DNA of 64,000 nt from Utricularia gibba. Lineage: Eukaryota > Plantae > Magnoliophyta. The notes beneath the pieces are model-generated. The model did no database searches and was not told the DNA's origin. It saw only the letters and a list, made by a program, of their open reading frames with translations. Shown here piece after piece: positions 8,990-61,362 of this stretch. The stretch covers positions 1,426,001 through 1,490,000 of the forward strand of contig NEEC01000014.1 in NCBI GenBank assembly GCA_002189035.1, in the 5' to 3' direction. The stretch's first letter is position 1; each line of letters starts with the position of its first letter. A program made the position numbers and the translations under genes.

Positions 8990-10727
8990 ATGGCGTGTAG
9001 GGGATTTTGGGAATGCCTATTGAAGCTTTTGAATTTTATTTTACTCCTCGCGGGTTGGCGATGATTGGCTATGGCATATACCTCTTTGTGGAGTACAAAA
9101 CTGCTGGTTCCAGTGGCGATGATCTGCCACTTCCTCCCTCAAGTTCGGAGACAATCTTTCTTAATCGGCCTCTGCTAATGGCTGTGTCTTTGGGTGATAA
9201 CATTTTTGACAAGTTGCCAAGAGCTTGGTATGCGAAAAAATTGGGGATTTTCCATTTTTATTTTTGTAAGCCACATGGTACAACGTTATAATTGAATAAT
9301 CTGTCTGAGAGTAATCATGGTGAAAATGATTAAAAAATTGATGAAATTAAGAATTGTATTTATTTATTTGAGAAAGCAGTTCCTTGCTAACTCCATAGGT
9401 TCTTCGTTCTTTACCTGCAGGTTCATATATCTTTTCACTGGAGTTGGTGTAGTTGTTCTCTTAATTGCTTGTTTTGGCTGCATTGGAGCATCAATGCGGA
9501 TTAGATGCTGTCTGGCTTGTGTATCCCTGCATAAATATAGTTTTAGTATGCTTAATTTAGCTAGCTCTATACTTTGTTGTTCACTGCTCTAGGAGCTATT
9601 GGTTTCTTAACATAATACAGTATTCTGTGTTTGTGGTATTGCTCATATTGCTGGAGCTGGGTTTAGCAGCATTTATATTCTTCGATAAGGGCTGGAAAGA
9701 GGTTAATATCTCCCATTTTTTCATTTCACTCATTATATGTTCAAGTTTAATGACTAATGGATGGCAGGAAATCCCACATGATAAAACTGGAAACTTCGAT
9801 CAAATTTATGATTTCCTGGATGACAACTGGAAAATATTCAAGTGGGTGGCCCTTGGTGTTGTTATATTTGAGGTAATGATAATTATATGCTTTCCAATTT
9901 CATTTTACAGGATAGTGATGCAGAGAATACGTTTTTCTTGGTCTTGATTCTTGTTTCCATTAAACTTTTTTGCGGAATGGATCTCTGTTATTATGTTATA
10001 TATCTTCTTCATGGTGTCTCACTGGACCATGGAATTTGGCCTTCTGGCCTGTATAATAGATTTGGTACAAGGGGTATCGTACTTGTTTGCTCCTAGAGAG
10101 CATATTTTGTGTCTGTTTCCCATGGGAATTTTGCCTGGATCAATGCTTATTTTGTTAGAATGTAGCAATTGCCCTACTGGTTATTTGATTCTTTAGCTAC
10201 TCTCAAATTTCAGGCGCTTCTATTTTTGTTAGCACTTGTTGTTAGGGCAGCAAATAGACCAGCAGACTATGACAGCGACGAGGAATATATATCAGGCCCC
10301 AGGCAACAGATTCGGCAGCCCTTGATAAGCAGGTCAGCTGTTCCAGCCACGGGTGTCCCTGTTACTGGTATCCTGGATCAGCGACCAAGCAGAAATGATG
10401 CATGGAGTACACGCATGAGGGAAAAGGTAATTTGTGTTGATTATTGGCGTTTTACATGCATGCCCTTTTGGTCGTTTGTTGAACTTAAAATGCTTAAACG
10501 GATCGCTTTTCTAGAGCAGATGATGCTTTCTGAATTTTTCTATTCCCTACTCTGAATAGTTCTCACGATGGGGTTATTGGCTTTCGATACTTAGAGTTGC
10601 TTGTTTTCCCGTAAAACAGTATGGACTGGATACAACCGAGTTTACATACAACCCAGCGGATCCAAACAGGAGCCAGCTAGCTGCAACTCAGGCCCCCGAG
10701 GAAAGGAGTCGATGCACTATAATGTGA
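8990..10727 (+). CDS. TOM2A: Tobamovirus multiplication protein 2A (tetraspanin-like); 6 exons; 1-nt frameshift at about 9052-9056 in this sequence
   Basis: MACRGFWECLLKLLNF, then in a shifted frame LAMIGYGIYLFVEY; LPRAWFIYLF, RNDAWSTRMREKYGLDTTEFTYNP, and a C-terminal CaaX motif CTIM*. Exons 8990-9227, 9421-9520, 9621-9701, about 9768-9872, about 10213-10426, 10620-10727. Confidence 0.88.
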
Positions 10728-49961: not shown

Positions 49962-51446
49962 ATGGAGGAAGGAGGAGACGGGCGGCGCTGCAAACTGGGC
50001 TTCATTTTCTTCCTGGTGGTTTCTCTTGGTCTGACGACGTCGGCCGGAGGAGCTCGGGATGAAGAAGAGGTGAGGCGATCATGCGATAGGGATCTGAGCC
50101 TTGTTCTTCCTTATCCCTACAGCAGTTTGCCCAACATGGTCTGCAGATCTCTTTGGAACTCCTACTTGTTGAGAGTAAGTGTGCTGCTGTTGAATTACGT
50201 ACACGATTCAGGAATAACTCCGCATTTGCAGTACTCGAGATCGAGAAGCAACGAGCTGACGATCGTGGTGTCCACGATATACACCAGCGGATGGGTGGGC
50301 ATCGGATTCTCGCCGGACGGGAGGATGCTGAACTCGAGCTGTATGGTTGCTTGGGTGAACGGTGAGGGGCGGGGAAGGATACGGCAGTACAAGGTGAACG
50401 GATTGATTCCCGGCGAGATCAAACCGGATGAGGGGCAACTGCCTCTCACCAATGTTCCGCCCTACATGGCTCTCAGCTCCGCCACCATTTACTTGGCGTT
50501 TCAGCTCGATCTCAACCGGTCGCCGGAGCACCACATTACGCATCTTCTCCTGGCATTCAGCACCAAGAATCCTCACCATCTCCGTCTCACTCTTCACGAC
50601 GATAAAGTTAGCATCGGCTTTGATTTCTCATCGGGTACGTGTAGCTCATCCTGCAACCCGCTCTTTGCAAAACAGCATGCAATGGCGTGCGTATTGATTG
50701 AAAAACCTTGGTGAATACCTCTCCTGAGCAGGGGAAACAAAGGCAAGTGGAGCAGCTGATTCTTCTTCTTCATCATCATCATCATCATCTGCTGCAATCG
50801 TGAATGACATGAGGACAACTCATGGAGCACTGGCTATCTTAGGATGGGCTGTTTTTCTTCCTCTGGGTACAATTTTCGCAAGGTACCTGAAGAAGAGAGA
50901 GCCCTTTGGTACTATCTTCACGTCTTGATTCAGTTCGTCGGGTTTCTCCTCGGAGTCGCTGCCATCGTCGCCGGAGTGTCCCTCAACAACATACTCCCTG
51001 TTCCCGTCCCCACCCACAAGGGCGTAGGAGTTTTCATCCTTGTCCTCACCATTCTCCAGGTATGACACAGAAGATCTGCGCATTGATCATGATAACACGC
51101 CAATGAATCTGGATTTCACAGTCGGCTCCACTGAAATCATGAATCTCAACATCTCATCATTCAGGTTTTGGCTTTCTTTGGGCGGCCGAGCGACGGGAGC
51201 AAGTACCGCAACTGCTGGAGTCTGGCGCACCACTGGATGGGCAGAGTCTGCCTTGTGATGGGCGGCGCCAATATTGTTATTGGGCTCCATGTCGCTGGCG
51301 CTGGGACGCCGTGGAAAGCAGTCTGTGGGATGCTTGTGACTTCAGTCCTGTTAGCGGTTGTTGTTCTTGAAGTAGCACTGCGTCTGGAGAGGAAGAGAGC
51401 CAAAGCAGCAGGCGCCATGCAGCACCATGAAATGGCTGTCAAGTAA
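49962..51446 (+). CDS. Cytochrome b561 and DOMON domain protein (At3g61750-like); 4 exons; 1-nt frameshift at 50902-50904; poly-Ser linker from a (TCT/TCA) repeat at about 50760-50790
   Basis: GWVGIGFSPDGRM (DOMON), HGALAILGW, WYYLH, HKGVGVFIL, HHWMGR: the four haem-ligand His motifs of CYBDOM proteins are present. Confidence 0.9.
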
Positions 51447-52843
51447 GTGGGATTAGGAAAACCGGTGTTTTGTTTTATTAATTTCTTGAAATAATTTAGA
51501 TTAAAATTTTAAATATATCAATATTTAATCATTATATAATAAAATTAGAAATCAGATTTTATTATTAATTTTAGAAATTATTGAATTTAAAGATTAAATA
51601 AAAGATTAATAAAAAAATCATATTATTTATTTTTTTACTTATTCTAAAAATACATTTATATTAACATTAAATTATACAATATTTTAATATATTAAAATTT
51701 ATAAAATATATTTTATTTTATTAAATGTTATATATTATAATTTTATATTATTTTATAAAACAATTTTATAATTTCTAATTGATTACATTTACATAATTTA
51801 AAAATTGACTATATTCTACATAATCTAAAACACAACTTTAAATTCAAGAAAAAATCCCATGTGTGTTTTTTGAAGCATGTGTAAGGAAGAATGGTGATAA
51901 AACTATGTTTTAAAATCCAACATCAAATATGAAATTAGATTTGGTATAATTTGAATCAATGATTTTTTTTTTTATTTTGATTCTATAATTTTTATAAAAA
52001 GTTATTTTTTTGAAATTTAGAAATTTTTAATTTGAATCATTATTTAGTTTTCATTACAGTATTTTTCATAATGCATTGGAATAGAAGTATGAAAATGGTA
52101 ATTGGGGAAAAGTTGGTGGCGCACAAAGGGATACATGTAGTAGGCCCATGGCATTATAAAACACTGCCTCTTTTCACAAGCTGGTGTGTGTGTACTTTCA
52201 AGCGGGTTGCATACACAAATATTTATAAATAGGGCCCAAAATTATTTGTTTTTTACATTTGGAGCTTAGCGGCAGCCTATTGGGAGGCGACAGGTGGTCA
52301 GTAGTACCACTCCGAGACCAAAAACCCTTCCCTCCTGTCCTGGTACGATCGTCCTACTCTATACAAACACACTATCGCCTCTCGTCCTCTCCGGCGACTT
52401 CGCTCCAAATCGCCGCATCTTTTCCTCCTCCGCGGACTCCAAATCGGAAATGTCTACACTGTAATATCGTGTGTCTGCTGCTGTTACGTTTTCACTGTAG
52501 ATTCCTGCAAACTCGTAGCGATTTTCCGGTGCCGTACTCGTCTCGTCTTATTTCCAGGTATTGACAACGCTGAACTCATACACTTGCTGCGACGCGAAGC
52601 TTTGTTTCTTTATTTGCTTCCTAGGGTTTCTGATTGCATGTTCTTGGGTTTTGACTCCTAGGATAGTTAGATTTCATACGATTACCAAATCCAAACGCTC
52701 CGAATCAGTCGTTATTTTGCTAGGGAGTCATTGGACCAAATTTCGATAACTGTATTTATTTACTCTTCCCTGACGAAGATGATCCCTTGCCTTTTGTTTC
52801 TGCGGCTATAAGATTGTTAAGAGACTTGGAATTATTCCTCAGG

Positions 52844-55155
52844 ATGGGGAGGGAGAAGATCGAGATCAAGAAAATAAGCAATGCAGCCGCAAGGCATGTG
52901 ACATTTTCAAAGAGACGTCAAGGTCTTCTGAAAAAGGCTCGAGAGCTATCGATTCTCTGCGAGGCGGAGGTGGCGGTGATCATCTTCTCGCAGTCCGGGA
53001 ACCTCTACCAGTACTGCTCAAGCTCCAAGTAATGACATTGCCCCGCTCCTTCCTTTCTTTTACTATAATCTATATAATGTGTGCTTTTGGTCTAACCCTG
53101 TGCTTGAGCCAAATGCATCATCTCTCCCCATCAACTTGCTTCACGATATAGAGACTCCTTCATTCATGCTCCACCTTCTTTTCCTTTTTAACGAGAGGTG
53201 TGTGTCTGCATGGCCTACGTGAATGTGTGTATCAAAAAGAGGCATTTCGACACAATAGTGTAGTTTGATGGGCTGAGGCGGCGCACCACCTTGGGCCTGG
53301 TTTGTGACTTGCGGTAGGAGGGAAACCGTACATGTTTTACCAGAATCCCCACTTGGAGTAGATCAGCTAGTGGATAAAGAGTAAATGTACATGGTTGGGG
53401 CTCCTAGATGGCTACAAGTGTTGATCTGACACGGAAACTGTAAAAAAAATGCCTGGTTTATATTATCATCACGCTTAATTGTAGAACTGAAAAAGCGAAT
53501 TACTGTTGGAAATGACAACTAGCATGATGTTGATATGGGGTGTAGTGCATTTGGCAATCCATGTAGATATAGGAACTCTTTAGGGGCTTTAAATGATCTC
53601 GCTAATAAACATACGAGTTATCTGGAGAAATTGCCACGCGGTGGTCAGCGGATAGATGAGCAGTAGTATTAAGAAGGATTTGATTTTGGGTGTATAGCGA
53701 CATTTTCATCCCACATCATAGGATGCAGGCACTTGTAGATGTTAAACATGGCCACCAGCTGGGCGGGGTTCTTTTTTAATTGGTTAGGAGAAATCTTTAG
53801 GGAGATTGTTTTCGCCGAGTTTCTCTTTAGTTACTAAGAGCTCCGTGGTTGTCTGAAGCATGGAGGATACACTCAATAAGTTCTCAATGCACATGGACTC
53901 GGAGCAGCAGCCGGTAAGTTCACTGGTACCTGTCCCATGTGCTCATTTTTTTTTTCTTCTTTGTAGAAAATCCAAAGCATATCTCTCTACCTGCCTTCTT
54001 TTTTCTTGTTTCAGGAAGGGAGCACAAGGCAGAATCAAATGAACAGGGGCGTTGAAGATGTGATGGATTACCTCAGGTTTGAATCACAGATACACCGCCC
54101 CACAACTTTTACATGCTAAAAAGGTTGCTTCAACTCAACTCCTGCAATGTTTAATTGTCATCGGAGCAGGCAAATCAATACTGAAAATTTTCTGAAGTTG
54201 AGCGAGGAAGAACTTACAAAGCTTGAGGTGAAGCTTGAAGGAATACTTGCATTAGTGAAGAATAGAAAGGTTCTGATCATCTGCACTTTAAAATTCCCAG
54301 TGATCTTGATATCAATCTTTACATGGTCAGCAGGTTTAACTTCTCATAGCATGTACTCACCGACAAGCAAAATGCAATTAAGTAGATAGTTTACCATAAA
54401 GGACCTTTTTCTTTAGGAATATCTACGCATTAGTATCTTTGCATCTGAAAGCTTTCAATGATCCTGCCAAATAATTTCAGGATTCTCACACCAACAATGC
54501 AGTCAGATGCCAATCAAGCGAGCTAAGTCACATACCTCATGAAGGTTCTGATGCAATGTCAGGAATCAGTACCAGAGGACTGTATTTCAAATACCAGCAA
54601 TTACAAAATGGTGGCCACTCAGAAGTAACTACTTATCCTGAAAGATGGACACCACCACCAACCGGTGTTTACAAAGTGAATTTTGCTGGAGTCACTATTA
54701 GTGATATGAATGTTTCTGGAGTGGGTGTGGGGATAGTGGTAAGGAACTGGAGAGGAGAATTCATGGCTGCTCAAGCAAAGTTCTGGCCTGAGTTGATGGA
54801 CGGCAGCACTACTTGTCTGTTTGCTGCTAAATGTGCTCTGGAATTTGCAGTATGCTATTCCTTCGTCCATATTTTGGTGGAAGGAGATGACCCAAGCACC
54901 ATCTACACTCTACAGAATATGCTGCAAGATCACTCTGTAGAATCTAATAATATAATCCAGGAAGCCAGAGGCTGCATGAGGCAACTTAGCAGTTGCGTCT
55001 TTTCACATCTACAAACATCAGGCAACACTGCTGCACATATGGTGGCACTATATGCAAAAAACGTTGCTGATGAAGATGTCTGGCTCATGGAAGAACCTGA
55101 TTTCCTTGTTGACATCCTTCTGACTGATAGCTCGGTTGAACCAATGATTCGCTGA
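52844..55155 (+). CDS. Divergent MIKC-type MADS-box protein (AGL15/18- or SVP-related) predicted to be fused to an RNase H-like domain; exons 52844-53028, 53859-53913, 54015-54076, 54170-54269, 54481-55155; 358 aa
   Basis: [11 protein letters not shown]...[33 protein letters not shown]; I- and K-region exons of 55, 62 and 100 nt; the acceptor ataatttcag at 54480 opens a stop-free 675-nt frame. The MADS part is high confidence; the fusion is inferred. Confidence 0.8.
54646..55155 (+). mobile_element. Non-LTR retroelement-type RNase H-like domain (RVT_3/RNase H type), no RT or other TE parts nearby
   Basis: [58 protein letters not shown] and W.EE.PDF follow the plant RNase H-like consensus WxPP..KxNxDG..GxGxVxR..G..VExD..HxxRxxNxxAHxLA. 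Confidence 0.85.
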
Positions 55156-55892
55156 AAGAAGTCTGCGGGCTCCTTTGTTCAAGGAAATGTAGTTTCCAAA
55201 ATTTATGTTTTCATACTTGCAGCATTCCTGCCAAATGTTTGTAGACGCGAAAAGACTCTCAAATGCATACTCTGGTCCCTAGTTTCAGAACTATTATTGA
55301 CAAGCCCACTACCACATTTTCAGTACTCTTAAAACAATATGCCAATCCAGCTGCACATTGCATGTCATCAAGGTCATGCGGTATCCAAATCCATAGTAGA
55401 GTATTGCTATCGAAAAACATCAACTCCATGCAAAACCCAGAGTGATCCTCCGTTCCTTAATTCAAACTATGATAAAGTAAAGTAATCATCCTCCTCACCA
55501 CTGAGTGCTCATTCTTGCAGGTCCCTCTATATGTTAAAGTTCTATTTTCTAGGAACGAGTCGATACCATTGGCTCTTGGGAATGGGAGAAACTAATACTG
55601 GGGATTAAATGTTTCCCCTAAACAGAATTCCACAGCCCCTATTGGCGGGTGAGAGAGAATAATAGGATGTAAAACACCAATAAAATGGATCATTTTGTCA
55701 GTGTAAGCAATCCTCTCCTAATGTGGTGCATATAGAGAACTCAGGAAAGCGCAGTTCATTATAAATGCTAAAAGCCATAATACTGCTCTATCTAACAAGA
55801 TCATGTTCCTTAGGAAGACAACCAAGTCTAACTAAGAACTGAAAATAAATTTTCAAAGCATGGAAGATTAATTTCAAAAGAAAGAAACTTAC

Positions 55893-56650
55893 CTCCACAC
55901 GGTCTTCAGCAATATGCTCATGATCATCACCTTGTCATCAGCGATTTGTTCGTGATATCCTCTCATAGGCTGAAAGCGAGGCAGTCAGGTTACTCCTTTG
56001 GGAGGAAGATGCCGACTTGAAGAAAGTGACGGTTAAAATCTGAAGTAGTTAAGGAAAAAAGAGATTAATGAGTAAACAAAAGCATTGACAGAATCTACCA
56101 TAGCATGCCCGTATTCATATGCAATACAACATGCGACTGGTAGTGGTGGCTTCGTAGGCTGCAGCTAACAAACTAATTCCATTTTTGTTCTGGATGGAAA
56201 GCAGTCCCATTTCAATAAATATCTCTACTTTCCTTCCCACGACAACGCCTCCGCCTCGACAACCCTATTGTGAACTTCTTTGAGTATTCTAAGTCAGCAG
56301 CACTCACCAGCTACTACTCATCGGTAGCATGAAACCGCAGTAATACACGAGGTAGTGGAAAAAAGTAGAAAGAAACTAGACATCGTCGACCTTCCGTCAA
56401 TCCTATTAGCAGCAAACAAGGAGACCAAATCTAGTCTTCAACTCGTGTTTGTGAGCAAATCTAAAATAAACCAACGTACCTCGCCCGCGAATCCCCTCAC
56501 CATCCTTTTTCCAAGCAGCGCTTTCAGCCGGCCACAAAACCTTCCTGAAATACATGTTCAGGAACTCCGACTCAGATGCTGAATCCGATCGCCATTGCTG
56601 CATCCGCTCTCATTCGAAGGTTTCGCTCGTTCGCCGCACAGAAAACGCTC
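55893..56650 (-). other. Unidentified spliced transcription unit (lncRNA or small-protein gene)
   Basis: Telo-box-like AACCCTAG near 56657; donors GAG|GTACGT (56478), CTG|GTGAGT (56308) and GAG|GTAAGT (55892); acceptors with pyrimidine tracts at about 56404 and 56040. No long ORF. Confidence 0.4.
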
Positions 56651-57144
56651 GCCGTCTAGGGTTACGCGAAGGAATCTTGCTTCCCTACGAGAGTAAAGGG
56701 GGGTTTTTTTTTCTTCTTTTCGTGATCCCGTCTCAGAGCATGGGGTTAAACTTTCCCTTTACAGGTACATTATTATTATAATCATATGGTACGGGTCAAA
56801 ATGTTGGTATGTTTAGGTATCCAAGTTAAAAATCGTACTTCTTTTGAAGCCACATAAACAGTAACCGTACACTCGTCCCTTTTTGACAATAATTAATAAT
56901 ATTGGGAAATATCAAAATTCGGTACTTTTATTTCATTAAAAATTATTCATTTATAATATTTTTATTATTTTATATGATATATAAAAATATAATAATTTAT
57001 ATTAATATTATTCTATATTAAGTAAGATGAAAAAAATTTTCTCCATATAAAATATTTTTCTATTTCATCCATAATTGATATATGATTAGTTTAATATCTT
57101 TACATTTAAGAAAATAATCTATTTAACATCCAAAAAAAACAAGT

Positions 57145-59814
57145 TCATGAAGGCAAGAAGGTGCACCCTTTGGCCTTGAGTTTTTTCTCTAAACCGAAGA
57201 ACTTGATTCCAGACAACACCGCCTCTGCAGCAGACTTCTTCATCTGCTCGCCGAGCATCTCCTCAAGAACAATCACATCAGCTTCGCGAAGCAATCCCGA
57301 CTCTTGCATCATGGAAAACACCCTCCTCGCCTCTTCTGTGGTTCCATGCTTGCACATGCCGTATATGATGGCAGAGTGAGTGATGCTGGTGCGCGAGCAT
57401 TCTTGTTCCGCCATTTCCTTCACAACCTCAACGACCCTCGCCGCGTCGTTCGACTTGCAGACATGGATGATCTTGATGGCATACTTGAACTCCATGGGGC
57501 TATCATCCACGTTAGCGAGACAGTCGTGAATCAGTGTGATTGCAGCATCTACCTCACCTTTCTCAGATGTGGCCTTGGCGAGGGAATGGTAGGCAGTAAC
57601 TGAAGGGAGTAAACACCTTTCCTTCATCAGGTTGTAGCAGTTGCAGGCTCCTTGTACATCTCCAGCTTTAGCAAAACACAAGATTGCAGTGCTGTAGGTC
57701 GTGGAGTCGAGCATCAGATTGGAGGTTTTGAGTTCATGGAAGAGACTGAGTGCGCTGGTGACTCCCCCTTTTCTAAGACAGCCATCCATAAGAGTGTTGT
57801 ATATTGGAATGCTTACATACTTTTCCATCTTCAAGTGCTGGAAGATCTCCAGAGCCACAGCTACTCCATTGTTCTTCTCCATGAGGCAAGAAAGGAATTT
57901 CGGTAGACCATCAACAACAGAGACTTTCATCCGTTGCATCTGTTCTATAACTCCATCAAACTCCTTGATCTTTTTTGATTCAACATAAGCAACTAGTATC
58001 GGATTAACCGTATTGAAATCTGGGAGGAGGTCTTGTCTAACAATCTCAAGGAAAAGTTTGGAGGCTTTTCCAACAAGCCCTGCATTGCACAACCCAGAAA
58101 TAAGGGAGCTGTATATTGTCAAATCGGCCCTATACCCAGAGTCCATCAAATCCTTGAGCATACCACAAGCCAAACCAATTCTCCCATCAGCTACATAGGC
58201 ATCAATCAATGATCCGTAAATCGCCCTACCAATCAAATATTTCCTTGCTTTCATCTCAGTAAACAGTTCATAAGCCTTATCTGCAAGATTTCTCTTGCAA
58301 AGAGCCATGATCAATGTTGAGTAAGCCATGACATCTGGTTCAATACCATCCTTTCGCATCTCCTCCCACACCTTGAAACAATCATCCAGGTTACCCTGTG
58401 AAACCAACACCTTTATCATTGCTGTGTAGGCAAAGACATCGGGTTTGCACCTGTTTCTTCTCATCTGATCCATAAGTTCCAAAACATCTTGGATTCGCCC
58501 CTCTTTGCACAAACCTTTAATCAGAATCATAAAGGTGATATTTTCCTCAAGTAAACCTTCATTCTTGAAGTCACTGTAAACAGACAAGGCCAAATTCATA
58601 TGATCTGTCTTAACTAATGCATCTAATATTCGATTGTACAGGAAGACCCTTGGTTTCACTCCATATTTCTTCATCTTTTGATACACATGGTATACCCTCA
58701 GACCCCTGCCTGCATCAGCATGCATTCTAATCAATATCTCAAACTGTTTCTCGCTGGGTGACTTCCCTTGCATATGCATCAGCTCAGGCACCTGGTCAGC
58801 ATCACGAAAGTGATTTGCACGGTTCAAAAAATATGCGAAGGCATTATAGCATGCAAAATCATGCCTATACCCTTTCTGTTTTCCTATAAAAAAGACGAAC
58901 CAAATCGTAAGCTCAAATAACAAATGATGAACATGCATGCTAAATAGAACATGTTGGATCTTCCCTAATTCTTATATCCTTAGAAGGGAGGTTAGGGAAG
59001 AGTGTACTAAAACGAAATGCAAACCTATTCATTCACATGTTGCTCTGATGTACACAATGAAATCAACCTCATTCCTGTATCCTCTATGACTAAACTTCAG
59101 CAAGAAATCTCATTCACAAATTCAGTAAGCATCATGGAATCGTGAATTCAATGTCACAACCTGGACACATTAGTTCCACCTGACTCCCATATTCTCTATC
59201 TTAGAGAACATAATTAGACACCTGCAAATCTACTCACTCCACAAGCAAAACACCTTGCCAAATTCATTTGATTTGAGGTGGCAGTGTTAAGCTAACTTCT
59301 AAAAGAATACTCAGTTCAAGCACATGAGATCAGATGCAGAGAGAAGGGAATCTGATTATAAGCAATGTAAGTTCTCATTTACCAGCCCAATGGAAAAGCT
59401 TGGAGGACAGCTTAGGATCAACGAGCGGAAACTGAAGAACCTCTGCCACCAGTTTCGGTGTCACCCGGCGGAGCCGATTAAGGTCCGTTACCAATTCGAG
59501 GTTCCAATGCTTGTGTTTTCTAAAAGCATCAACTATGTATCTGGCTATAGGAGACAGCTTCTTCGCCAACAAGAAAAATTTCTCAGATGGGTCTGTTCCA
59601 AGAGGTGGTCTTTGGTTAAGTTTTTCATCCGGGTCCCATTTCTCAAGGTCGAAAAATGGCTGCGAAACAGCAGTTGGTTGACTAGAGTTCCTGGGACTTT
59701 GACGGTTGGAGAAAAATCCGCCTCTGACGGTGGGCGATTCTGGGTTGGTTTACGGTGGCCGTAGAAGAAGTACGGCTTCTGAGGCCTGTTGAGCACCGCC
59801 TTGGCTGGTGGCAT
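57145..59814 (-). CDS. P-class pentatricopeptide repeat protein (At4g20740-like); exons 59814-59383 and 58883-57145; 1-nt frameshift at 59732-59734
   Basis: FFYGHRKPTQNRP(TVRGGFFSNRQ), LSPIARYIVDAFRK, FHWAGKQKGYRHDFACYNA, tandem 35-aa repeats, and the C-terminus VLSGIKFFGLEKKLKAKGC. Confidence 0.92.
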
Positions 59815-61362
59815 TTGAATTTAATCTACGCTGCAGCGGCGGTTTTGCCAGGAAAAAGGAGCCCAACTCTCATATTCTGCAGTATGGAGATGTGGGAGTC
59901 CGGCGGTGTCTGTATATTGTCAACAGAAGGTCAGATTTTCCAACGAACACGACATGTATGTAGAAATGCCTCAAAGATTCAAACAATGCTTTCAGAAGAA
60001 ATACACCAATAAGGACGAACACCAGTTGAAGCAACCAACCCTAATTAAAGCCGAAGAGCAATCATGAATTTTTCCTCGATCGAAATTGCCACAAAAATCA
60101 ATTCCCAAAACCGAATGACCAATCATCGACAATTTTAGATGCAACTAGAGCATATAACCCTCCATGATGGAGATTCTGTGCAACGCCCTGCGGCCGGGAC
60201 GGCTTCTCGCGATCGGGTTGCGCTGACGGCGAGATGATTCATAAACTGACCCCTGTCGACTAAAGCCACGGAGAACCTGGCTAAATTGTGTGTTCGATCT
60301 GGAGAGCCTAAGAAAGCAGCTGTACAGAGTAAAGTTAGAGAAGTTGAAGACCAACTGCCTTCGAAAAAGAAAACTGCCAGGCAAGTAAACAAGACGGAAA
60401 ACACAGTCAACCGCCGACTTCACAACACCAAGAGTAACTAAACTGCTAAACCGGGGTAAAGAGGTCGGCATATCGGTGTTCTTGATGATGCATAGTCTTC
60501 TTGTCCCTCCCATCCACGTAGGAGACCACCGTGAATCCGAAATATACCAAATATTGTGCAGTTGAAGGGAGGCGGTTGAAGCAAACCAAGAGGAAAACAA
60601 CAGTTGAAGGGAATGGTTGATTTTAGTATGATTTTTTTAGGCACCTGAGTCAGGGGAGTCGGGTAGCTGCGGATCATCCATGGCCATTGACTCAGCAGCG
60701 TTGTTCTTTGGAGCCAGTTTTGGTTTCAACCTCTGTGGCAAGCCGTTCTTAGAAGATGCCTCCGATCAATGTCTTACTTCCCGCATAATGGTTTTGCACC
60801 GGAGCCGAAGAAAACACATCTCAAACAGCATCAGGCTCAAGGGAATTATGGGACATAAATAACCGGATAACCACGAGGGCACTTCCATTCTCTTACCTGC
60901 ATGACCATGATCAACATCCCCAGGCATGACAATGCCGGCAGATCAACAATGAAATGAAAGCGCAGAATCCCCCATTCTTGTCAAGATCTCATTTTTCCCC
61001 TTATGATGCACCACTGACAGTGTACAGTGGGCGCTAACACTGATCTGCAGAAGGTGACGCACGTCGGAACTAACTGAAACTGTATAAATCCGAATCCACT
61101 TAAAAAATTAATGATCTTTTATTTTGGATTTGACTCGAGCTGCCCAAAATTTGTGTTTGCAAACAAAGGGAAGTATGAAGGGTCCGTGGGTCGCGGTGGG
61201 GGTAGGTCGGGTTTTGTTTGCTCTTCAGCAAGTGCTCGTGGAGCATGCGCCTAGCATTTAGTAGTCATAATCTTTTTGTCGGCTCTCGGGTGGCGGTGTG
61301 CTACAATTCGGTTTTATAGGGAACCAGAATCACTGTATTCAGGGCTGAGAGAGGAATTAACG

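Follow-up and report, generated by a model that had tools for sequence, protein, structure and literature searches.

We describe a gene of the bladderwort Utricularia gibba (plus strand, positions 52844–55155 of a 64 000-nucleotide stretch of contig NEEC01000014.1, assembly GCA_002189035.1, contig positions 1,426,001–1,490,000; hereafter 'the window') that encodes a MIKC-type MADS-box transcription factor fused in frame to a retroelement-type RNase H-like domain. The locus is very probably the U. gibba member of an old, domesticated fusion family, found in Lamiales only, which arose through capture of a fragment of a long interspersed nuclear element (LINE) and not through a recent splice donor mutation. 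In this family the exons for K3 and the C-terminal region of the MIKC factor are replaced by a single exon, which codes for a linker and for an RNase H-like domain that stems from the 3'-terminal part of a LINE-type ORF2.

Gene model

The original prediction, made from the sequence alone, comprised exons of 185, 55, 62 and 100 nucleotides (nt), an acceptor at 54480 and a 675-nt open frame, together coding for 358 residues. All these coordinates and sizes proved exact. When the exons are joined and the frame is checked, the coding sequence (CDS) starts with the ATG at 52844, spans 1077 nt and yields a 358-residue product. All 358 codons are open and each of the four introns has GT..AG ends.

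Exon 1 (52844–53028, 185 nt, plus strand like the exons that follow; donor GTAATG) aligns with exon 1 of the orthologues described below and contributes the start codon and the MADS (SRF-TF) DNA-binding domain. Pfam assigns SRF-TF (PF00319) to this exon with an E-value of 1.1e-25 and 89.3 bits (cut-off 26), covering the full profile (positions 1–48). Exon 2 (53859–53913, 55 nt; donor GTAAGT) corresponds to the I region, as both its frame and its splice sites fit; its peptide pairs with the I-E-D-I-L-R-K-F-S-M segment of the orthologues, in which exon 2 is 67–70 nt long. The K-box starts in exon 3 (54015–54076, 62 nt; 62–68 nt in orthologues). Exon 4 (54170–54269), which codes for the K1/K2 helices, is the last K-box exon of the window copy and is exactly 100 nt long both here and in three orthologues. 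The terminal exon (54481–55155, 675 nt) begins after an acceptor AG ending at 54480 and consists of the linker (54481–54633), the RNase H-like domain (54634–55152) and the TGA stop codon (55153–55155), up to which the frame stays open. Pfam maps RVT_3 (PF13456) to 54556–55152 (7.1e-14, 52.2 bits, cut-off 21.6). Thus, two of the three domains named in the original prediction were recovered with confidence, whereas the K-box (PF01486) is partial and sub-threshold (20.3 bits against a cut-off of 30; profile positions 11–69 of 93).

The incomplete K-box is a property of the family, since K3 and the C-terminal region are missing in the window copy and in all orthologues alike. Similarly, the canonical MIKC exon series (about 185 nt, I, 62, 100, 42, 42 nt, C-terminal) is not preserved: family-wide, exons 6–8 have given way to the RNase H exon. 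The window copy differs further in that no relic of the orthologues' exon 5 was found in any frame of the 211-nt intron 54270–54480. The gene region has neither a second copy nor a repeat inside the window. Upstream of the start codon, a TATA-like TATAAATAG is located near 52222. In addition, a GT at 52558 and an AG at 52841–52842, directly before the ATG, would fit an intron in the 5' untranslated region (UTR), a feature of many SVP-like genes; this region has no RNA coverage.

The fusion family in Lamiales

A search with the translation of the terminal exon (54481–55152) retrieved two Primulina proteins (373 and 380 residues) that contain SRF-TF, K-box and RVT_3 together and match the query with 49% identity over 93% of its length (E about 1e-53). 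Judging by sequence similarity, homologues at this level of significance put the MADS–RNase H architecture far beyond chance. A subsequent search with one of the Primulina fusion proteins extended this architecture to two genes of Primulina eburnea, to Henckelia pumila, Buddleja alternifolia and Andrographis paniculata, and to two Logan proteins. The next-best matches after the fusion proteins were all SVP, JOINTLESS or AGL24. The 358-residue conceptual product of the window is collinear with the fusion proteins from the first to the last residue. Related genomes, which the original prediction had named as a place to look, therefore do carry the fusion (Primulina, Henckelia, Buddleja, Andrographis and, as shown below, Genlisea).

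The gene structure is shared as well. Exact exon mapping gave sizes of 182/67/65/100/45/663 nt for Primulina tabacum, 182/67/62/100/42/654 nt for Buddleja and 188/70/68/100/45/645 nt for Henckelia, compared with 185/55/62/100/–/675 nt for the window copy, in which exon 5 is missing. In Primulina, Henckelia, Buddleja and Genlisea the linker and the RNase H-like domain reside in a single terminal exon (645–663 nt) that starts from a homologous acceptor. The separate exon 5 of the orthologues (42–45 nt) lies upstream of this acceptor and aligns with exon 5 of SVP.

Some members of the family were already present in databases. XP_073024844.1 (P. eburnea), XP_051149770.1 (A. paniculata), KAG8389697.1 (B. 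alternifolia) and LOC142534052 (P. tabacum) are collinear end to end with the window product and share with it both the terminal-exon boundary and the substitutions in catalytic columns; however, their RNase H parts are just 49–54% identical to that of the window copy, and most of them have exon 5. The first two are named 'MADS-box transcription factor 47-like' and 'MADS-box transcription factor 18-like isoform X2', and the fusion is recognised in the name or annotation of none of the four. In Genlisea aurea (KE526773.1, 845–3261), a MADS exon precedes an RVT_3 open reading frame (ORF) on the same strand by 1.7 kb. GenBank splits this locus into a 61-residue MADS gene and a partial 169-residue RVT_3 protein (EPS74435.1). 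Since every exon in between can be read there in frame, a 42-nt exon 5 among them, we consider the pair to be one fused gene.

Evidence at the RNA level comes from two Logan contigs, L003 (2007 nt, SRR33149123) and L005 (1240 nt, SRR33835441), each with an unbroken ORF that opens at the MADS start codon and closes at the stop codon of the RNase H part. The genomic fusion genes span 4–12 kb, and the contigs must therefore represent spliced fused mRNAs. The L003 transcript skips exon 5, while in L005 (85–1080) exon 5 is joined to an internal acceptor of the terminal exon, so that about 39 linker residues are removed. The fusion family is thus alternatively spliced around the linker. Exon-5-less mRNAs or models were found in relatives (P0004 and P0008). 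For the 199-residue ORF of the window and for the Andrographis protein, the contig collection held no exact record.

When a phylogenetic tree was built from the MADS-I-K parts, all seven fusion proteins grouped in a single clade (100/100 support), separated by a long branch from the SVP-clade proteins used as comparators. Judging by database matches, the MADS part of the family appears nearest to the SVP/StMADS11 clade. The two groups have the MADS, I and K1–K2 exons in common (about 185, 62 and 100 nt), and the best non-fusion matches, all from the SVP clade, show 39–50% identity over the MADS-K part. In contrast to SVP, JOINTLESS and AGL24, the fusion proteins lack the K3 exons, the C-terminal domain and the SVP C-terminal motifs, and have an RNase H-like domain instead.

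An exhaustive search of 1.84 billion representative proteins was also run with a profile built from the linker plus the RNase H part. The close relatives it returned were limited to the fusion cluster, the G. aurea fragment and two small Logan fragments. Beyond them came generic plant RVT_3 proteins near 100 bits, and the long ones that were scanned combine zf-RVT with RVT_3. A stand-alone RVT_3 gene of 193 residues was found in Escallonia herrerae (10001–10582), within a Myb gene but on the opposite strand. It is kept in two Escallonia species and has the D-to-A change (NFAG) seen in the fusion proteins. No MADS exon occurs within 10 kb of it, so nothing dates the fusion before Lamiales. The Escallonia gene may belong to a pool of already inactive asterid RNase H-like genes.

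Origin of the terminal exon

The segment 54580–55134 (plus strand) shows homology to plant LINE-type ORF2 proteins, namely to their C-terminal end (zf-RVT + RVT_3). In tblastn searches with seven LINE-type proteins it was the sole match within 50000–58000 (25–34% identity, E down to 1e-18), and no remnants of the reverse transcriptase (RT) or zf-RVT were detected in the flanks of the RNase H ORF over the same range. The original prediction that no other parts of a transposable element (TE) accompany the RNase H ORF thus held. The locus does not qualify as a copy of a non-LTR (long terminal repeat) retrotransposon, having no RT or zf-RVT parts and no multiple copies in the window. The C-terminal RNase H of LINE ORF2 has the same fold, belongs to the same RVT_3 family and is about 30–33% identical to the domain in the fusion proteins; weak similarity reaches about 20 residues upstream of the domain. 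The differences are that LINE proteins keep the first two catalytic carboxylates, which are replaced in the fusion proteins, and that the fusion gene is single-copy in the window, without RT, zf-RVT or repeats, and evolves under host-gene selection.

We took the LINE-derived part to extend from 54580 onward, which leaves 33 codons between the acceptor and 54580 outside it. An extension of LINE homology up to the start of the terminal exon was rejected, as the HMMER envelopes that reach profile positions 11–30 have low posterior values and few identities. Two possible matches of the linker to SVP, namely of the first 14 terminal-exon codons to exon 6 and of Q-S-S-E to the C-terminal E-G-Q-S-S-E-S motif, were suggestive but not robust.

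We infer that the terminal exon was captured from a LINE. A 5'-truncated LINE fragment would have inserted in sense orientation into an intron that follows K-box exon 5, in a plant ancestral to Gesneriaceae and core Lamiales at least. A single capture would have turned the fragment into a new terminal exon that supplies its own stop codon and uses an acceptor equivalent to 54480/54481 of the window. After such a 5' truncation, just the 3' end of ORF2 would be left, comprising the RNase H domain and the stop codon. The window copy would additionally have lost exon 5, an arrangement that is also present as a splice form in relatives.

The original prediction had offered a different mechanism, in which the first 42 nt of the terminal exon are K-box exon 5 and a G>C change at 54523 killed its donor, leading to read-through into old intron sequence and an inserted RNase H ORF. 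The putative lost donor, GAG/CTAAGT (54520–54528, plus strand), is indeed located exactly 42 nt past the acceptor, inside linker coding sequence (E-L-S). The C at 54523 is genuine and not an assembly error, since RNA contigs X1, X2 and X5 (three runs, two studies) show no difference from the assembly. Nevertheless, as a recent event in this genome, this mechanism is exceedingly improbable. The terminal exon, with its homologous acceptor, is common to orthologues from Gesneriaceae, Scrophulariaceae and Lentibulariaceae, and in Primulina, Henckelia, Buddleja and Genlisea it is open across the homologous site. Moreover, the first 42 nt cannot be exon 5, because the orthologues carry a separate exon 5 of 42–45 nt upstream of the acceptor. 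The site itself reads GAA/TTCAGG in Primulina and L003, and AAA/AATAAGT in Buddleja, where TAAGT is shifted one base out of register. Finally, the peptide across the site (Q-S-S-E, then L/F-S/R-H) is conserved between the window and Gesneriaceae. An older event of the same kind has some appeal, as the first 14 terminal-exon codons of Buddleja weakly resemble SVP exon 6 (D-T-Q...L-R-T-Q versus G-T-Q...L-R-L-Q). This weak similarity hints at a possible ancient read-through from a 42-nt K exon that would positionally be exon 6.

Fold, active site and selection of the RNase H-like domain

An AF2 model of the domain, based on a 32-sequence alignment, has a pLDDT (predicted local distance difference test) of 92.9 and displays the RNase H order of strands and helices. 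Foldseek matched it to archaeal, bacterial, human and retroviral RNases H in the PDB with a probability of 1.00, RNase H1 being the best match. In agreement, the domain profile matches RNase HI (PDB 4e19). A homodimer prediction for the domain scored 0.00, a value that counts neither for nor against binding.

The active site is altered. The D-E-D-D tetrad of type-1 RNases H reads A, C/S/T, D, H in the fusion proteins, the second position being C in the window copy. At the first site, all of the fusion proteins show NFAG(A/R); the glutamate has been exchanged for C, S or T, while EGD is kept. Their LINE-type relatives, in contrast, keep NFDGA, xEA and EGD; the fourth position is H (N-x-x-A-H) in both groups. 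As two catalytic carboxylates are gone, a role as a nuclease appears very unlikely from the sequence.

Despite this loss, the domain is conserved. Pairwise ratios of nonsynonymous to synonymous substitution rates (dN/dS) for the RNase H domain are 0.23–0.42 within Gesneriaceae and ≤0.18 between families, where dS is saturated. The dN/dS check called for in the original prediction was also done by maximum likelihood under a one-ratio model, which gave an omega of 0.22 for the RNase H domain compared with 0.17 for the MADS exon. These values indicate that purifying selection acts on the domain within its host gene. The suggestion of domestication is thereby borne out, by an omega of 0.22 together with conservation of the gene across families.

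Transcription and status of the U. gibba copy

RNA contigs from four runs of three studies, for which the tissues are not given, were aligned to 51800–57500. They derive from RNA, because introns are missing from them. What they represent is a spliced antisense RNA (minus strand, 53699–56730) of about 2.4 kb, seen in all four runs and three studies. It starts near 56730, has exons at about 56480–56730, 54535–56039, 54217–54462 and about 53699–54140, as well as an optional cassette exon at 56308–56401, and covers exons 2–5 of the five-exon sense model. All the skipped stretches (54141–54216, 54463–54534 and 56040–56479, or 56040–56307) have CT..AC ends, which correspond to GT..AG on the minus strand; the RNA is therefore a spliced minus-strand transcript. 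The contigs are continuous through the proposed sense introns 2 and 3 and end near 53700–53800, in sense intron 1.

The antisense RNA shows little coding potential: its longest ORF from the first ATG has 57 residues. The first exon resembles a normal 5' UTR with a start codon (ATG 56603), from which the frame closes after 42–57 codons. There was no Rfam match on either strand of 52000–57200 at E-values up to 0.1, no Pfam match for four minus-strand ORFs of the antisense RNA and no usable ESM Atlas match for its first ORF. The antisense RNA may be a regulator of the MADS–RNase H gene. It is reminiscent of COOLAIR, the antisense RNA at the MADS-box flowering gene FLC, which is likewise spliced, begins beyond the 3' end of a MADS gene and spans the larger part of the gene body. 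However, the likeness is positional only, as the two RNAs have no sequence relation and FLC belongs to another MADS clade. Two single-base differences from the assembly were noted in homopolymer runs outside the CDS. An extra A after 57131 (X1 and X6) looks like a homopolymer error of the assembly, and an extra T after 53945 (X5 and X6) may be a polymorphism.

Several observations weigh against an old, functional fusion gene at this locus. Exon 1 has zero RNA contig coverage in the four runs, and none of the four sense junctions was seen there, every junction being antisense. In particular, the 54269/54481 junction anticipated in the original prediction was not observed, although contigs cannot prove absence of a transcript. 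Exon 5 is missing from the window copy, which also occupies the longest branch of the MADS-I-K tree. RNA-contig variants within the CDS include seven non-synonymous and two synonymous changes, a ratio that fits locally relaxed constraint. As for the family, the tree comparators were SVP-clade proteins only, with no other MIKC outgroups, and several well-annotated Lamiales, such as Sesamum, Erythranthe, Salvia and Olea, were absent from the fusion matches listed, for which both loss and split annotation are possible explanations. Furthermore, our proposals below on DNA binding, on the oligomeric state and on what the RNase H-like domain does are all inferred.

The points that concern the window copy could mean that the family is functional but its U. 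gibba member is silent or decaying, an intact frame beneath an antisense transcription unit. The uncovered exon 1 and unseen junctions in four runs of three studies, the lost exon 5, the long branch and the excess of non-synonymous variants all fit such a state. We regard it as unlikely, but as deserving serious attention. Against it, the 358 codons are open and the four introns have GT..AG ends. With dS above 1.4 to every orthologue and dN/dS ≤0.18, the frame was evidently maintained over the greater part of its history. Absence of exon 5 by itself need not be a sign of decay, given the exon-5-less mRNAs and models of relatives (P0004 and P0008). Besides, MADS genes are often tissue-specific, and the contigs, as noted, cannot exclude a sense transcript.

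Since the antisense transcript is the sole RNA observed, with canonical minus-strand introns and support from three studies, it might also be argued that this RNA, as a long non-coding RNA or as an mRNA for a 57-residue peptide, is the functional unit and that the plus-strand frame is irrelevant in U. gibba. This is very improbable. The RNA has no conserved ORF and no Pfam, Rfam or Atlas match, and such an explanation leaves the conservation of the plus-strand frame across families unaccounted for. Antisense transcription, moreover, commonly coexists with a functional sense gene. It is also decidedly improbable that the locus comprises two genes, namely a MADS gene cut short after exon 4 and a separate RNase H-like gene. 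An ATG at 54556 does open a 199-residue ORF, the Genlisea RVT_3 part is annotated alone in GenBank, and stand-alone Escallonia RVT_3 genes have the same D-to-A change. On the other hand, relatives produce fused mRNAs (L003 and L005), the intermediate exons in Genlisea are all present and in frame, and in the window the reading frame runs on without a break from the acceptor at 54481, with the linker upstream of ATG 54556 being conserved. Overall, membership of the U. gibba locus in an old Lamiales fusion family created by LINE capture accounts best for the data.

Neighbouring gene

Downstream of the fusion gene, on the minus strand, is a pentatricopeptide repeat (PPR) gene (57145–58938 and about 59380–59830), identified by homology as the orthologue of At4g20740. 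Its 597-residue ORF represents the C-terminal four fifths of the protein; the N-terminal part is apparently encoded on the far side of an intron. The best matches are from core Lamiales and are just 64–67% identical, indicating that this Lamiales lineage evolves fast.

Proposed function and significance

MIKC factors are among the best-studied plant regulators. Their MADS and I regions serve DNA binding and dimerisation, K1–K2 provide dimer contacts and K3 mediates tetramer formation. Higher-order complexes are considered to depend on K3 and the C-terminal parts. The fusion protein keeps MADS, I and K1–K2, is devoid of K3 and the C domain and ends in a well-folded RNase H-like domain. Based on the established roles of these regions, it would, in the manner of other MADS proteins, bind CArG boxes as a dimer, would be unable to build canonical K3-mediated tetramers or quartets and would present a new C-terminal module. 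The inactive RNase H-like domain would serve as a module for binding nucleic acid or protein, not as a nuclease. A more specific idea, which we consider improbable, is that the inactive domain still recognises RNA:DNA hybrids, allowing a MADS factor to read R-loops formed by non-coding or antisense transcription. We know of no MADS-box protein with such a mode of action. If it were true, the R-loops could include those of the antisense RNA of the gene itself, and CArG binding would be coupled to co-transcriptional RNA:DNA structures.

Recruitment of a domain from a mobile element into a host regulator, followed by its retention under selection, has precedents in plants, such as FHY3/FAR1, which derive from Mutator-like transposases, and DAYSLEEPER, which derives from a hAT transposase. 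In those cases the TE supplied the DNA-binding part. The fusion gene differs, since here a host DNA-binding factor has gained a retroelement fold at its C-terminus.

As to novelty, the original prediction knew of no described MADS–RNase H protein. This still holds for the literature, where full-text searches found no description of one: a survey of the Primulina MADS-box family does not mention an extra RNase H or RVT domain, and papers on the eggplant and sugarcane MADS families mention RNase H only as a reagent for quantitative PCR. It does not hold for databases, since GenBank and RefSeq models exist under uninformative names. A MIKC factor with a domesticated retroelement domain is therefore new with respect to the literature found, while databases already hold such models. 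The family is easily mis-annotated, being split into two genes in Genlisea and bearing names taken from rice MADS47 or MADS18 in other plants. It illustrates clearly how a piece of a LINE can become domesticated as part of a transcription factor and be kept by selection over several Lamiales families, and it would amount to a natural experiment in what a MADS protein can do with the capacity to dimerise but without tetramerisation.

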